DNA of 63,910 bases, the filler included, from Neoconidiobolus thromboides FSU 785 (lineage: Eukaryota; Fungi; Entomophthoromycota), in assembly GCA_025603075.1 (NCBI GenBank). It is 6 parts of 6 records of this genome, joined end to end, with 100 filler letters (N's around TTAATTAATTAA, not from the genome) between each part and the next. Parts side by side here need not be neighbours in the genome. Positions count along the whole stretch, not along the records: positions 23,669 to 44,820 come from MU626545.1; 5 more parts are not named here. One strand, given 5' to 3'. The notes under the pieces are model-generated. The model saw only the letters and a list, made by a program, of their open reading frames with translations. It searched no databases and was not told the origin of the DNA. Made by a program: the position numbers and the translations under genes. Positions within the stretch are counted from its first letter, which is position 1, and each line of letters opens with the position of its first letter. Shown here piece after piece: positions 23,797-42,970 of this stretch.

Positions 23797-24528
23797 ATGA
23801 ACTCAACTTTATTTTTAGTTGTATTCTCTACTTTGACAAGCACCATTACAGCTTTATCCGGTTCTGGTGCAATTACTACTCATCCCTTTCAAGCACAAAG
23901 ATCCATTCTTGAAACATCCCAAGTAGCTTGTGGTATTCCAGCATCTCAAATGAACCTTGATAGAGTTACTGCAGTACAAGGTTTAGACAAATCTCAATGT
24001 GGTACCTGCTTAAAAGTAACCTCAAAACAAAATGGTCTTGTATTATATATTGTTGCTGTTGATATTGGTGGACAAGGTTTGGATATGAATACTGTAGCAT
24101 TTTCACAACTATCAGATGGTGAAACTACTGGCCATGTTGATGTAACTTGGGAATCTACCGATGCTGGTAAATGTGCTGGTGTAATTTTTAGTGGTGATAG
24201 TTCGTTACCTGGTATGCGTACCCAACCTGAAAGCAGTAGTAACCCTAGTAATCCAAGTCACATAGGCTACTCGGTTAAATCTGAAGATGGAAGTAATGAT
24301 AGTGTCAAAGATCAAGTAAAGTTAAAACAAACCACAAAATATAACGAACTGGTTACTGCAGTTCCAAGTTCAAATACAGAACCAACAGATGAATGTGGAG
24401 ATGGTATCTATAGAATGTGTATTTCTGATAAGCGATATGTTACATGTGTTTACAAACAAAGATTTATTGAATCTTGCAATCCAGCATTAACATGTCAAAA
24501 TGCAGGCAATGCAATTCAGTGTGTTTAA
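23797..24528 (+). CDS. Secreted expansin-like/RlpA double-psi beta-barrel protein with C-terminal 6-Cys (CBM19-like) domain
   Basis: Signal peptide; CGTCLKVT...VDIGGQGLDMNTVAFSQL...GHVDVTW; S/P-rich linker; C-terminal 6-Cys module. Confidence 0.8.
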   Translation: MNSTLFLVVFSTLTSTITALSGSGAITTHPFQAQRSILETSQVACGIPASQMNLDRVTAVQGLDKSQCGTCLKVTSKQNGLVLYIVAVDIGGQGLDMNTVAFSQLSDGETTGHVDVTWESTDAGKCAGVIFSGDSSLPGMRTQPESSSNPSNPSHIGYSVKSEDGSNDSVKDQVKLKQTTKYNELVTAVPSSNTEPTDECGDGIYRMCISDKRYVTCVYKQRFIESCNPALTCQNAGNAIQCV

Positions 24529-25786: not shown

Positions 25787-26815
25787 ATATCCTTTTTTAT
25801 ATTTAACATAATTTGTGAAACTTGAAAATGAGCTCAATTAATTTAAATTTTTATTTAAATATATTTATAATATAATTTAATAGATAGTTTCATATGGTTC
25901 AACAATAGCCTAAAATAATGCAGGTAGGTAGCTTAATATTGCTTAAAAAATAAATAGTAAACATTTTGTATGATAAGATAACTTGAAATTTAGTCATTCT
26001 TAAGTTGAAAAAACGAGAAAAAAAGCCAAAGTGTGTAACTTTTTGGCTTAGTATATTTTAGTTCCATTTGTCCAAATCTAGAATTTCTATTATTCTACGC
26101 TTCAGTTAAGAGCCATTTTTCTAACAGTTCCAAGTCATTATTTTTGTTTAGTTTTAAAAATAGTAAAATAGTAATAAATAATAATATATGCAATTAACAA
26201 ATAATTCAATATTTGAAATTTTAAACTTACAATTTTATTGAACTTATTTGATAATATCGAATCTTGATAATAGTTTTAATTGATTAAAGGAATACATCTG
26301 GATAAACTAGGAAAATTTACTACAAACATACAAACTTGTAACAATAAAGTCCAAAATAAATTAGGGTTAAAGAATAACGGGGGAATTAAACAGTTCATTG
26401 GCTACATTTGTCTTAACTAAGCCATTGCTTATTGCTTAAAAAACTTATGCTAGCCAATCAAAGTGAATAAATATACCAAATGTAACAATTCATGATTTTC
26501 AACAGTAGAAACCAAAATGCATAAAAAATTGATTCTTTCTTTTTATATATTTTATAAAAAAAAACTGATAACTTTTCATAACTGAATATAACATTTTTGT
26601 GTTTTAAACTTTAAGTTAAATAATTTTTTAAAGCTTTCAATTGTTCAATCTGGCTAAATTTTTAATACTTTTATTATTTTCTTCTTCTTCAATACAAAGT
26701 AAAGATAATTTAAAATCAAAGTTAAGCTCAATACTCTATTTTTAATAACAACTTATATCAATAAACTCAAACAAACTTATAAATCAATTTTAAACCCGTA
26801 TCAATTTCAATCAAT

Positions 26816-27617
26816 ATGATGATAGCTAATAATAATAGTAGTAGTAGTGATGAGAGTATAATACCACCGTTAAATAAGATGGCTTCTATGTCTTCAATGA
26901 AGTTTTACAATGAAAACTTAAATGAAACATTAGCCATCTGTTATTTAAAACGTGCTAACGAATCTAGTCACCATCGTTATTGTTACTCACGTAAGTAGAA
27001 AAATAAATCATTTGGTTAGTTCAAGATATCAATGTATCTAATATTTATTAATAGTCGCGGACGCAGTACCGTGGTGGGTTTGACGTGACTACTATTGACC
27101 AAATTCCACCGGATGAAACTCAAGAGTTAGCTAAGCCATCGATTGCTAAGTTAGGTAAATCCTTGGCCAAAATGATACTCCCAAAGATTTCACCTGACGC
27201 TTATTTAACCATTATCTCTCGATCCAATGACCAATTACGCCCCAACCTTTGGTCTGGTTTTACTACCAATTCTACCCTCTTCTTTCAACCACCTTGCTTT
27301 GATACTTGGGCGGATGAAGACTTTCGTACTTGGTAAATTATTTATAGGTGAAGTATTAATGGACTAATTAGGATTTTTAGTATCACCGCCATTTTAGAAT
27401 TAGCAGAAAACCAATTGAATTGTGAAAAGATTGTGGTTTGTGTGCATAAAGACTCGCCTGATATTGGTAAGTTTTTATTTATAGCATTTTAATTTTAATA
27501 ATTTAATATTTTTTAGCTGATCTTATTAAGGCCCTTTTTTATGTTGGTTTTCAATCTGTTCATCCTAGCGTCTATAATCAATCTAAAGAGTATCTTTTGA
27601 TTAGTTATGCCCTTTGA
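26816..27617 (+). CDS. OAZ1: Ornithine decarboxylase antizyme, decoded by a +1 programmed frameshift; 4 exons
   Basis: Introns 26991-27054, 27333-27380 (or -27371) and 27467-27516. ORF1 ends ...YCYSLADAVPWWV-TGA(27081-83). The +1 frame gives DVTTID...ITAILELAENQLNCEKIVVCVHKD...LIKALFYVGFQSVHP...YLLISYAL*, a typical antizyme C-terminus. Confidence 0.92.
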
Positions 27618-27940
27618 GTTGTTCATTACGATGGAATTTTAATCTTTTTATTTCTTTATCTTGCTTCTTTTTCAAAGCTTATATTAAAGTCATCTTTTAT
27701 CTAAATTTTTTTTTTGAAGCTTATCAAATTTTTAGATCTTTTTTTTTTTATCAGATTCGTTTTGAAACTTTAAAATAAAAAAATGCTTTTTTAGAAGTAT
27801 AGTTTATTATTAAAATGATTGAAAATAACATCAAACAAAAATATTTTATTTACTAAAAATATACAAAGTTAATTTTATAAATAATAAAAAATACAAGTTT
27901 AAAATTTCCATCCCAATCTAGTTCCCAATTCTCCCCATTT

Positions 27941-29083
27941 TCACTGTCTTAGATTTAAATTCATGTTAAAATTCAACCCTTGATTTATAGCTAACGGTGG
28001 GGGTAATTGTAATTCATTACTATTTCCAGCTTCTTCTATTGAAAACTGATGATATTGATTATTCGAATTATCTCCACTTAAAAAATATGAATTAGCATTA
28101 GAGATGGGTAATGGAATCGAATTCAAACTCGGTAATGAAAGTGAATTAAAGCCCACCGCATTAAAATATTTATTATTTGCTGATGATGAAGATGAGATAG
28201 TATTAGATGGTGGTAACCGGTTACTTGATGAATTAAAACCAAATGTAGTATATTGTTTATAAGCACTAATAGTAGTTGATTCTGGATAATACATTGGCTT
28301 ATTTGAAATTGATTGTGGTGGAAGTGAAAGTGGAAGCTGTGATAGATTAGGTAAAAAAGTAGTCATACTTTTGTTTATATTGGTGTTGTTATTAAAATCA
28401 TTGTTATTATTATCATTATTAATAACAGTACTTTGACTATGACTTTGGGTAAAATTCTTACTCATCACTCTACTTTTTTTCATAAGTAATTCCGTACTCG
28501 TTTTAAAATATTTAGGAATAAGGTGATAAAAATAAGCCCTTGAAATATCAATTAGACCCTTCTGTTTTAACTCAAGATAAATTCGACTTTTTGGCTTTAA
28601 TAAAAAATAACATGGAACTTTTTCACCATTCCAAGAACATTTTTTTTTTAAATTTAATTCTGATTGTTTAATCATATATTCTAATACTTTTTTATCCAAT
28701 ATTTTAACACCTTTTTTTTTCTTTTTGATTACATTTGTGCTACTTATTGAAGTAGAATATCTTTTTTCTTTTTGAATTTTAATAGCCGAAGTATATTGTC
28801 CATTAGAAAACTCAAATCCCAAAGTGTTTAATTGATTTCGTGAAAATAAGCCAGCTACTAAGGCTAGGATATTACTTTTATATTTGCTTTGATTTTGACT
28901 ATGTAATTCATATACCCTATTAACTAATTCATTTAACATCAATACTGATTTTTCAAAATTTAATTTGGGTAATATTGTCATTATGTTTTCAATTCTTGGC
29001 TTCACTTTCTTAATAGGTTTGGAAAGTGTTGGTGCTATAGCCTTGGGATTATTGTTAGGTTGAGCTATAATTGTATTTTCCAT
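27941..29083 (-). CDS. Putative DNA-binding protein derived from a transposase N-terminus, with low-complexity N/S/P tail (ORF A)
   Basis: First ATG at 29083 (the track start 29134 is TTG). NILALVAGLFSRNQLNTLGFEFSNGQY and ISRAYFYHLIPKYFK align with the transposase at 57864-58200. Confidence 0.7.
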   Translation of the reverse strand: MENTIIAQPNNNPKAIAPTLSKPIKKVKPRIENIMTILPKLNFEKSVLMLNELVNRVYELHSQNQSKYKSNILALVAGLFSRNQLNTLGFEFSNGQYTSAIKIQKEKRYSTSISSTNVIKKKKKGVKILDKKVLEYMIKQSELNLKKKCSWNGEKVPCYFLLKPKSRIYLELKQKGLIDISRAYFYHLIPKYFKTSTELLMKKSRVMSKNFTQSHSQSTVINNDNNNNDFNNNTNINKSMTTFLPNLSQLPLSLPPQSISNKPMYYPESTTISAYKQYTTFGFNSSSNRLPPSNTISSSSSANNKYFNAVGFNSLSLPSLNSIPLPISNANSYFLSGDNSNNQYHQFSIEEAGNSNELQLPPPLAINQGLNFNMNLNLRQ

Positions 29084-36807: not shown

Positions 36808-38772
36808 CTAATCAAACTTAGGATTAGTTACATCTACACCATCATAATCCTCGGTATACTGATTATCAGTTTTACTTTGAGTAGTATCAGGAGGCAACTT
36901 AGCCAACACATCGGAAGCAGAACTATTATCCTCATGAACGAAATCTGCAACGACATCACCAAGCATATGGACAAATAAATTAGGGAAGAAACCAGGGATA
37001 TCAGGAAAAGCGGACATATCAACAACTCTTAAACTCTTGACACCACGAACTCGGAATCTAGAATCAAGGACAGCGTAAGGATCAGTATCAGCACCCAATT
37101 TGGCAGTACAACATACATGATGACCCCATACTGTTTCAATAATCCATTTTGCTATTTGGGTTCTCGTTTTGATATTACTACCTGGTAATGCTTCTTGGTA
37201 TTTAGTACCTACATTGGTGTTGGTGCGGTTACGTAAAAACAGTATACCATCAATCAAAGCATTCATATCTTCATAACCATTACGATTGAATTTTAATAAA
37301 TTGATATCAGGTATATCATTTGGATTAGAGGATACTAAGTTGACATGGCCCTTGCTTTTGGAACGTGCTTTTAATACTAATTGTGTGAAGTAGTGTAAAT
37401 TATCAACAATATCCTGGGTATAGCCTCGATAATAACCATGGAAAAAGATAGGAATACTGATAAAGAAGGTATCAGGTTCACTTAAACCAGATTTTGAATT
37501 TTTAATTTGGCCACTGAAGCCAGGAGCGTGTAAATAAGGACCAGTTTTAGTTTCTAAATAATTTTTAAAGCATCGATCTTTAGTTGGGTCTGTGATCCAT
37601 GGGCAATCTTTAAATATTTCAAGATTTTGCTTTAAGTCGGTACTGTATGGGATCTCATAACGATCTTGAAGATTTTTACCTACCCCTCTAAGATTAGCAA
37701 TAACTGGGATTTTAAATTTGTTTAGTTGAGTTGCATCTCCAATACCTGAAAGCATAAGTAGTTGTGGAGTCATAAAAGTACCACCAGAAATAATAATTTC
37801 TTTAGTGGCAAAGAATTGATTTGGTACACTTGAATCCCAATTAGATTGTTGATACATTGGTGATGCTTTATAAAGGTATTTACCATGGCGAACATCTACT
37901 CCGATAGCTTTCTTATTTTTATCAAATAAGATTTTAGTAGCAAAAGTATCAGTAAGAATAGTTAATGGGGTAAAAGCTCGAGCCATTTGCATTTGACCAA
38001 GAAAATTCATTCTGGTAAAGTTATTGAGATGGACACCACCTGGGATAGTAAATGTAGATTCTTGGCTAGTACCAAGTTTGCCATTAATATAACCATTGAC
38101 ATCATACTTTGGATTTGGACCTAAAAAGGAGAGAAAATCGATAAGTGATTGATCAATTGGACCAACACGTTCTACTGGGTTGTAAGAAAGAGGTAACCAG
38201 CCATTGAAACCATGGTCATTAGCGTTTCTAAGATCCGTTGGATATTGATTATTTTCTAATGGCTTAAAATATTTGTTTCTAAACGTTGCTTCTTCAAATA
38301 CGGCATTTCCAGTTAAGCTCTTAAGTTGATCAAAATCTTGTTTTTGTGGGTACATTTCAATTTGAGCATGATGTAAAGAACATCCACCTAATCCACCTAC
38401 TCTTGGATAAAATACATTTTGACGGATACCGGTGATTTCTGGATAATGTTTAACAGAGAAATCAAAGGAAATCTTTGGATCTTCAGTTGCACGGAAAGAG
38501 ATACCAGCGGTAGTTATATTATAACTTGCTGGCCCTGGTTCGGGCTCTGGTCCAGCTTCAATCAACAAAGTTTTGTAACCATATTTGGCTAATCTCATAG
38601 CCGCCATACCACCAGCAGATCCTCCTCCTACAACAATGTAGTCATATGTTTTATCGGCGGTTTTATAATCATTCTTTTTATAAAGATAGGAGTCATCGCC
38701 TCCAGTATCTGTGGCGATAGTTGAGCCTGAGAATAAAATAGTAAAGGGGATAATAAAAAGAAAGCCCTTCAT
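36808..38772 (-). CDS. Secreted GMC oxidoreductase
   Basis: Signal peptide; DYIVVGGGSAGG FAD fold; YPRVGGLGGCS; EIIISGGTFMTPQLLMLSGIG; WGHH; LRVVDMSAFP. Intronless. Confidence 0.92.
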   Translation of the reverse strand: MKGFLFIIPFTILFSGSTIATDTGGDDSYLYKKNDYKTADKTYDYIVVGGGSAGGMAAMRLAKYGYKTLLIEAGPEPEPGPASYNITTAGISFRATEDPKISFDFSVKHYPEITGIRQNVFYPRVGGLGGCSLHHAQIEMYPQKQDFDQLKSLTGNAVFEEATFRNKYFKPLENNQYPTDLRNANDHGFNGWLPLSYNPVERVGPIDQSLIDFLSFLGPNPKYDVNGYINGKLGTSQESTFTIPGGVHLNNFTRMNFLGQMQMARAFTPLTILTDTFATKILFDKNKKAIGVDVRHGKYLYKASPMYQQSNWDSSVPNQFFATKEIIISGGTFMTPQLLMLSGIGDATQLNKFKIPVIANLRGVGKNLQDRYEIPYSTDLKQNLEIFKDCPWITDPTKDRCFKNYLETKTGPYLHAPGFSGQIKNSKSGLSEPDTFFISIPIFFHGYYRGYTQDIVDNLHYFTQLVLKARSKSKGHVNLVSSNPNDIPDINLLKFNRNGYEDMNALIDGILFLRNRTNTNVGTKYQEALPGSNIKTRTQIAKWIIETVWGHHVCCTAKLGADTDPYAVLDSRFRVRGVKSLRVVDMSAFPDIPGFFPNLFVHMLGDVVADFVHEDNSSASDVLAKLPPDTTQSKTDNQYTEDYDGVDVTNPKFD

Positions 38773-42208: not shown

Positions 42209-42970
42209 TTAAACACATTGAATTGCATCACCTGCATTTTTACATGTTAATGCTGGATTACAAGACTCAATAAATCTTTGTTTATGAACACATGAAACAT
42301 ATTGCTTATCAGAGATACACTTCTTGTAAATACCAGCTCCACATTCATCAGTTGGTTTATCGTATGAAGCGTCTTTTGAGGTACCCTTTGGTATATCTTT
42401 TGGTGTATGGCTTGGTTTATGTGATTTTTGTGACTTTGGGCTTTCTTCTTCTTCTTCTTCTTCTTCAAAACCATTTCCATCTTCATCTTCTGATTTTACT
42501 GGCTTCTCAGGCTTAGATTCGGAGGTTTCAGCTCCAGGCTCAGTACGCATACCAGGTAATTCAGCATCGCCACTAGTAATTACACCAGCGCATTTACCAG
42601 CATCGGTAGATTCCCAAGTTACATCAACATGGCCAGTAGTTTCACCATCTGATAGTTGTGAAAATGCTACAGTATTCATATCCAAACCTTGTCCACCAAT
42701 ATCAACAGCAACAATATATAATACAAGACCATTTTGTTTTGAGGTTACTTTTAAGCAGGTACCACATTGAGATTTGTCTAAACCTTGTACTGCAGTAACT
42801 CTATCAAGGTTCATTTGAGATGCTGGAATACCACAAGCTACTTGGGATGTTTCAAGAATGGATCTTTGTTCTTGGTATGGATGGGTACTGATTGGGCCAG
42901 AACCAGATAAAGCTGTAATATTGCTCATCAATGCAGAAAATGCGATTAGAAATAAGGTTGGTTTCATCAT
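42209..42970 (-). CDS. Second secreted expansin-like DPBB + 6-Cys protein (paralogue of 23797-24528)
   Basis: Same architecture with an acidic poly-Glu linker; core identical to the first copy at the DNA level. Confidence 0.82.
   Translation of the reverse strand: MMKPTLFLIAFSALMSNITALSGSGPISTHPYQEQRSILETSQVACGIPASQMNLDRVTAVQGLDKSQCGTCLKVTSKQNGLVLYIVAVDIGGQGLDMNTVAFSQLSDGETTGHVDVTWESTDAGKCAGVITSGDAELPGMRTEPGAETSESKPEKPVKSEDEDGNGFEEEEEEEESPKSQKSHKPSHTPKDIPKGTSKDASYDKPTDECGAGIYKKCISDKQYVSCVHKQRFIESCNPALTCKNAGDAIQCV

Follow-up and report, generated by a model that had tools for sequence, protein, structure and literature searches.

A Neoconidiobolus thromboides antizyme gene very probably decoded by +1 frameshifting at GUU-UGA-C, with a candidate CUG-initiated upstream ORF in its leader

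Introduction

How can an antizyme be made from a locus whose antizyme domain lies in a reading frame with no start codon? This question is raised by positions 26816-27617 of the window, by which we mean the whole stretch of DNA analysed here (63,910 nucleotides, filler included, from Neoconidiobolus thromboides FSU 785, Entomophthoromycotina; assembly GCA_025603075.1). An earlier note, made from this sequence alone, had proposed an antizyme hidden by a +1 frameshift at GUU-UGA-C, whereas the deposited protein model of the locus (P0001, a "hypothetical protein", K502DRAFT_344658, on MU626545.1 of the same assembly) reads through with no shift. Searches of the literature by accession (GCA_025603075 and two SRR runs) found no papers, and the papers searched included none that links antizyme with Entomophthoromycotina or Kickxellomycotina.

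Results

Structure and splicing of the locus

Direct reading of positions 26500-28000 with exon-by-exon translation shows a locus of 4 exons and 3 introns, the mature mRNA of which contains two partly overlapping ORFs (Table 1). ORF1 (204 nt, 67 codons and a stop) opens at a tandem AUG-AUG and ends CCG-UGG-UGG-GUU-UGA-C; within exon 2, its frame reads (C|TC) GCG GAC GCA GTA CCG TGG TGG GTT TGA C. ORF2 (438 nt, 145 codons and a stop) lies in the +1 frame, is open from GAC 27082 through exons 2, 3 and 4, and has neither a start codon of its own nor an ATG at its head. The predicted trans-frame product comprises 212 residues and would read ...VPWWV-DVTTIDQ... across the junction (junction peptide ...YCYSLADAVPWWVDVTTIDQIPPDETQELAK).

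Table 1. Features of the antizyme locus, in window positions.
Feature	Positions	Strand	Remarks
5' leader of the antizyme mRNA	26573..26815	+	243 nt; X1 contig starts 27 nt before 26600; 5' end approximate
Conserved upstream ORF, apparent CUG start, no AUG	26650..26745	+	31 codons; A at -3, G at +4; stop TAA 26743-45
Exon 1, ORF1 start (tandem AUG-AUG)	26816..26990	+	58 codons + 1 nt
Intron 1, GT..AG, phase 1	26991..27054	+	64 nt; absent from contigs of 4 runs
Exon 2: ORF1 tail (27055-27083) and ORF2 start (from 27082; 83 codons + 2 nt)	27055..27332	+	translation, spliced contigs
Predicted frameshift cassette	27071..27084	+	module A G-UGG-UGG 27071-27077; P-site GUU 27078-27080; UGA 27081-27083; C 27084
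Intron 2, acceptor 27380	27333..27380	+	48 nt; joint 27331>27380 (cut +1) in 4 runs
Exon 3, ODC_AZ domain core (ITAILELAENQLNCEKIVVCVHKDSPDI)	27381..27466	+	Pfam PF02100
Intron 3	27467..27516	+	50 nt; spliced contigs
Exon 4, coding part, ORF2 stop TGA 27615-27617	27517..27617	+	translation, spliced contigs; 3' UTR to at least 27693

We compared contigs from 4 public runs belonging to 4 studies (X1, X2, X9 and X15 among their labels; X9 and X15 are recorded as RNA-seq) with the window over 26600-27800. The contigs of all 4 runs are spliced, with exactly 64, 48 and 50 nt removed and no indel at the shift site, and the longest, a 959-nt contig of X1, reaches from about 26573 to 27693. In all of them, ORF1 and ORF2 remain out of frame; the same is true of L001 and L003, mRNA-type contigs of relatives with 53-57% ORF2 identity, of which L001 ends in a poly(A) tail. 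Intron 1 and the TGA that closes ORF1, as well as an ORF2 that starts from GAC without an ATG in the +1 frame of GUU-UGA-C, had been read by the earlier note from the genome, and the spliced contigs agree with the sequence on each of these points. The splice form that could have overturned that note, one joining the two ORFs in frame, was not seen in the contigs of the 4 runs, a result that is short of absolute exclusion because contigs can hide rare splice forms.

In X2 and X9, the first junction is drawn two bases leftward (AC..AT), with an equal skipped length and an unchanged frame. These contigs carry G against C in the window at 26990, the last base of exon 1, which would turn codon 59 from Leu into Val and improve the donor to AG|GT; the offset is most simply read as a C>G difference at this position.

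Alternative isoforms had been suggested on two grounds. Two acceptors 9 nt apart do exist, but the contigs use the one at 27380, the homologous mRNAs read FRT-C-I.AILE with no 3-residue insert, and the isoform from 27371 is unsupported. Likewise, the in-frame AUGs at 26816, 26819 and 26879 are present (with others at 26888 and 26897), but the tandem AUG-AUG is the only start that is conserved in 5 Entomophthoromycotina species, and the inner AUGs (26879, 26888, 26897) are unconserved and unsupported as isoform starts.

At the other end of the coding sequence, the last ORF2 codons and stop (window 27606-27617, GCC CTT TGA) recur as TGCCCTTTGAG directly past the L001 stop (L001 828-842), and a small indel may have shifted the stop in one lineage. 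Elsewhere in the window, in the flank region, two cerato-platanin-domain ORFs of ~250 aa each (E about 1e-9) lie in opposite orientation at 23797-24528 (+) and 42209-42970 (-), and an intronless GMC oxidoreductase of 653 aa lies at 36808-38772 (-).

ORF2 encodes an antizyme domain

Domain searches were run with single exons and with the database proteins P0001 and P0002, the natural mRNA contigs L001 and L003 also being used. Exon 3 by itself matches Pfam ODC_AZ (PF02100) with 27.3 bits, above the gathering score of 24.2 (E 3.6e-6), and the same domain is found at 2.9e-11 in P0001 and at 1.1e-14 in P0002, the ORF2 part of a relative's mRNA. A profile of ORF2 built from these two proteins (alignment A2) matches the human antizyme 1 chains 4zgy, 4zgz and 5bwa at ~4e-6. 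The antizyme identity suggested for the locus is thus borne out, with the domain confined to the downstream ORF in the +1 frame. An exhaustive protein search with exon 2 returned two representatives, one of which is P0001, and metagenome scans with a single protein and with alignment A2 found no relatives.

Both frames evolve as coding sequence. Close relatives of the window sequence in X9 and X15 show 13 differences, of which 12 fall in ORF2 and 1 in ORF1. In ORF2, 9 of the changes fall at third positions of the +1 frame and are synonymous, the remaining 3 being conservative replacements (I>V, I>V, N>S), and the sole ORF1 difference is synonymous in frame 0. This substitution pattern indicates purifying selection on both frames.

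Conservation around the shift site

The 12-mer TGGTGGGTTTGA (UGG-UGG-GUU-UGA) is identical in L001, L003 and the genomes of Entomophthora muscae and Massospora cicadina, and the longer G-UGG-UGG-GUU-UGA-C is common to the window and 4 other Entomophthoromycotina. Dimargaris xerosporica (Kickxellomycotina) has G-UGG-UGC-GUU-UGA-C after an intronless ORF1 of 68 codons, the chytrid Polychytrium has G-UGG-UGC-UCC-UGA-C, and Gigaspora rosea has the classic UCC-UGA-C site as UCC-U|GA-C. Over 7 aligned fungal cassettes (alignment A3), GUGGUG and UGAC are invariant. The G-UGG-UGG that abuts the shift codon in the window corresponds to module A, defined as 6-7 conserved nt in this position (PMC4505036); in Coprinopsis, module A consists of the G of codon -4, UGG and CGU, with natural UGG variants at -2 (PMC4505036). 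The C that follows UGA has been discussed as a weak termination context for antizyme recoding (PMC1874602).

An alignment with other early-diverging fungal antizymes had been proposed as a way to find conserved flanking stimulators; it shows module A to be conserved on the 5' side and no conserved structure on the 3' side. A single fold at the shift site gave a z-score of -1.5 and a five-species consensus fold gave -5.3 kcal/mol with positive covariation, neither of them convincing as a 3' stimulator, and an Rfam search at the locus returned no antizyme element. In the literature, a 3' pseudoknot or stem-loop stimulator is branch-specific and no requirement for antizyme membership. The linear element UCCCU described in the 2007 review (PMC1874602) begins 3 nt past the stop in L001, L003, E. 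muscae and Dimargaris, and is absent 3' of the stop in the window and Massospora sequences.

GUU figures among the 7 antizyme P-site codons in Table 1 of PMC1874602, where GUU-UGA is recorded from Cryptococcus neoformans, Aureobasidium pullulans, two Cryptomonas and two crabs. The codon had been called less usual in the earlier note; it is indeed uncommon, yet already documented, so that N. thromboides adds a case to known recoding. The same note's description of GCG-UAG as the classic budding yeast site needs correction, as Saccharomyces cerevisiae uses GCG-UGA-C and GCG-UAG occurs only in some of its relatives.

Alternative explanations and annotation errors

If the deposited model were right, a 14-nt micro-exon (27020-27033) within intron 1 would join ORF1 and ORF2 in frame and no shift would be needed. 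The P0001 sequence does read through, as ...YCYS-LQDIN-SRTQYRGGFDV..., the micro-exon editing out the shift, and the model also uses acceptor 27371. This arrangement, however, requires introns of 29 and 21 nt, the whole 64 nt are skipped in all 4 runs, and the L001 and L003 mRNA contigs have no insert and require the same +1 shift. The spliced contigs contradict both the micro-exon and acceptor 27371, and the error is of a class already described for Cryptococcus in the 2007 review, in which annotation removed the frameshift site by way of a shifted splice site (PMC1874602). We therefore consider it extremely unlikely that the deposited model is correct. Initiation within ORF2 would also make a frameshift unnecessary: AUG 27172 (MILPK...) shares the frame of ORF2, precedes the conserved domain and would give a 115-residue protein. 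It is preceded, however, by at least 5 AUGs in the ORF1 frame; its Met is unconserved, relatives having REVFPG there; conservation and purifying selection extend to the 30 ORF2 codons that precede it; and the invariance of the shift cassette counts against internal initiation as well, which makes this reading very unlikely.

An interrupted reading frame can also resemble a frameshift gene where there is a pseudogene or a one-base assembly error. We regard this as close to impossible here, given that independent spliced contigs match the genome without an indel, that the same arrangement is found in 6 other fungi (L001, L003, E. muscae, M. cicadina, Dimargaris and Polychytrium) and also in Gigaspora, whose stop codon is interrupted by an intron, and that both frames show the pattern of purifying selection. 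We conclude with high confidence that the locus is the antizyme gene of N. thromboides FSU 785 and that it is decodable only through a programmed +1 frameshift at GUU-UGA-C.

The expectation that gene predictors would misannotate the locus proved right for P0001, and the models of related genomes have comparable faults. In the E. muscae annotation, ORF1 and part of ORF2 appear as two separate genes, and the Massospora and Dimargaris models skip the shift site with false introns. The M. cicadina ORF2 also has, in the WVDDDFRT region (L006 about 1925-1945), one base more than that of E. muscae (GTAGAATGACGATTTCC vs GTCGATGATGATTTCC), which creates an in-frame TGA; the extra base is either an assembly error or the mark of a decaying copy.

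Intron 1 and the C-terminal peptide of ORF1

The proposal that splicing forms the shift region did not hold. The shift heptamer is entirely within exon 2, and intron 1 instead interrupts the coding sequence of the ORF1 C-terminal peptide, within a Leu codon (phase 1) that lies 26 nt before the UGA. Its position and phase are identical in E. muscae, M. cicadina and Gigaspora rosea, and it is missing in Dimargaris. From this comparison of genomes, intron 1 is an old intron that divides the code of the C-terminal peptide and no device for creating the shift site. A shift site assembled by splicing is found in Gigaspora rosea (L007 1455-1570), where the intron splits the ORF1 stop codon itself (UCC-U|GA-C).

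ORF1 C-termini were compared in the window (26975-27080), L001 (350-394), L003 (353-397), L007 (1340-1462) and L005 (380-418). The last 14-15 residues form a common Tyr/Ser/Thr-rich stretch followed by ...(G/P)W.(V/S/F), the C-termini reading RYCYSLADAVPWWV in the N. thromboides window, QSTFSLGASVPWWV in the Entomophthoraceae (E. muscae and M. cicadina), CYYYSTLAKKAGWCS in Gigaspora rosea and KYFYHAGKKSGWCV in Dimargaris. These C-termini resemble the nascent-peptide stimulator of Agaricomycete antizymes, YYYSTTFSGGP(G/E)WRF (YYYSTTFSGGPGWRF), and the Gigaspora peptide contains YYYST, identical to the start of that stimulator, so that the signal may predate the Agaricomycete clade. The stimulator was given a "restricted range" in 2015 (PMC4505036), and the resemblance hints that the signal is older than that range implies.

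A conserved upstream ORF in the leader

The 243-nt leader in the window contains no ATG anywhere, nor do the leaders of the other 4 Entomophthoromycotina. Within it lies a 57-nt island whose conservation far exceeds that of ORF1 and starts exactly at CTG 26650. In all 5 Entomophthoromycotina this CTG is flanked by A at -3 and G at +4 and preceded by an in-frame stop (at 26629-31 in the window, where an in-frame UUG also lies at 26641, and four codons before the CTG in E. muscae and Massospora), and the frame that it opens extends over 29-31 codons and ends 25-70 nt ahead of the main AUG (L001 85-174, L003 73-162, L004 1004-1096 and L006 1326-1421 in the relatives). The first 19-20 codons encode LAKFLVLFLFSSSSIQSK(A/D), also written (M/L)AKFLVLFLFSSSSIQSK.

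The variation within the block has the signature of a conserved peptide. Variable sites are distributed over the three codon positions as 5/2/13, a third-position share of 13/20 (binomial P = 0.004); every one of the four bases occurs at the third position of one Ser codon, and three occur at that of one Ile codon. Summed pairwise pN/pS is 0.12 in the uORF frame vs 1.38 and 11.2 in the other two frames, values that are indicative only, as the sequence pairs are non-independent. RNA structure was rejected as the cause of the conservation (consensus fold -0.7 kcal/mol), and so was a repeat, the block being unique in the window. A scan of the Dimargaris, Gigaspora and Polychytrium leaders gave only a weak resemblance in Dimargaris (ACG-GCA-GCA-UUU-UUG-GUC..., reading TAAFLVVVSVPFAQQNAK), which we left uncounted. 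The best reading of the leader block, judged from its substitution pattern, is a peptide-conserved uORF that is apparently CUG-initiated.

A possible parallel is the uCC of AZIN1 and ODC mRNAs, which likewise encodes a conserved peptide from a near-cognate codon in favourable context, within an mRNA of the polyamine pathway (PMC2811004). The conserved part of the N. thromboides uORF, however, is N-terminal and hydrophobic (LAKFLVLFLFSSSSIQSK), and its C-terminal third varies and contains no PP motif in Entomophthoromycotina, whereas the conserved part of uCC is a C-terminal proline-rich stalling motif; moreover, its host mRNA encodes antizyme, which has the opposite regulatory sign to the ODC and AZIN1 hosts of uCC. 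Lacking that motif and residing in an antizyme mRNA, the uORF is not a member of the uCC group, only a possible analogue. Among the uORFs of polyamine-pathway mRNAs reviewed in 2010, none is in an antizyme leader (PMC2811004), and our search of the literature found no description of such a uORF in antizyme mRNAs.

Discussion

By the mechanism that we propose, a ribosome at the weak UGA-C, with peptidyl-tRNA-Val on GUU, would either terminate and release a 67-residue peptide or shift by +1. The GUU-U sequence would permit the tRNA to re-pair on UUU at 2/3 positions, after which GAC would be decoded and ORF2 translated. If the gene behaves like all antizymes tested to date, a larger share of ribosomes would shift at higher polyamine levels, and the product would inhibit ODC and target it for degradation, so that a negative feedback loop would be closed.

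The locus has the two-ORF +1 design of mammalian OAZ1, and its ORF2 shows homology to the human AZ1 structures. In mammals, module A reads G-UGG-UGC, the form also found in Dimargaris and Polychytrium, and relatives of N. thromboides share the UCCCU 3 nt past the stop. OAZ1 differs, however, in having a UCC-UGA-U site with a 3' pseudoknot, whereas no Rfam antizyme element is present at the N. thromboides locus. The Agaricomycete antizyme of Coprinopsis cinerea (UUU-UGA) is similar to that of N. thromboides in that both have NUU-U shifty sites with module A abutting the shift codon, but the P-site codon is UUU rather than GUU, module A is G-UGG-CGU rather than G-UGG-UGG, and the conserved 3' double stem-loop of the Coprinopsis type was not found in the N. 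thromboides consensus fold. The antizymes of Cryptococcus neoformans, Aureobasidium pullulans, Cryptomonas and the shore crab have the same GUU-UGA +1 site and met the same fate of being edited out by annotators. They belong, however, to other phyla, and the Entomophthoromycotina and Dimargaris lineages are missing from the 2007 table.

Among the fungi sampled, GUU-UGA is found in both Zoopagomycota-grade lineages and UCC-UGA in the chytrid and the glomeromycete, and GUU-UGA appears to be the shift site common to the sampled Zoopagomycota-grade lineages. The authors of the 2007 review argue that such shift sites arose repeatedly (PMC1874602). Given that GUU-UGA occurs here in lineages outside their table and in different phyla, its presence in Entomophthoromycotina and Dimargaris probably reflects a further independent origin.

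Near-cognate start codons respond to polyamines and to start-codon stringency, and the uORF may for this reason act in a polyamine-sensitive manner. As a guess, it would gate the number of scanning ribosomes that reach the ORF1 AUG and hence the frameshift site. The wider proposal, that a CUG uORF under peptide-level selection gates ribosome flow as a second layer of translational control, together with a GUU-UGA site common to the sampled Zoopagomycota-grade lineages and a C-terminal peptide signal older than reported, is a tentative one, which we hold with less conviction than doubt.

For the natural history of antizyme recoding, these results add the Entomophthoromycotina and, with Dimargaris, the Kickxellomycotina, and they support the view that NUU-UGA sites are recurrent. 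They also provide a transcript-backed correction of wrong public models in 4 genomes (N. thromboides, E. muscae, M. cicadina and D. xerosporica). If translated, the uORF would be, as far as our literature search reaches, the first separate one reported in an antizyme leader.
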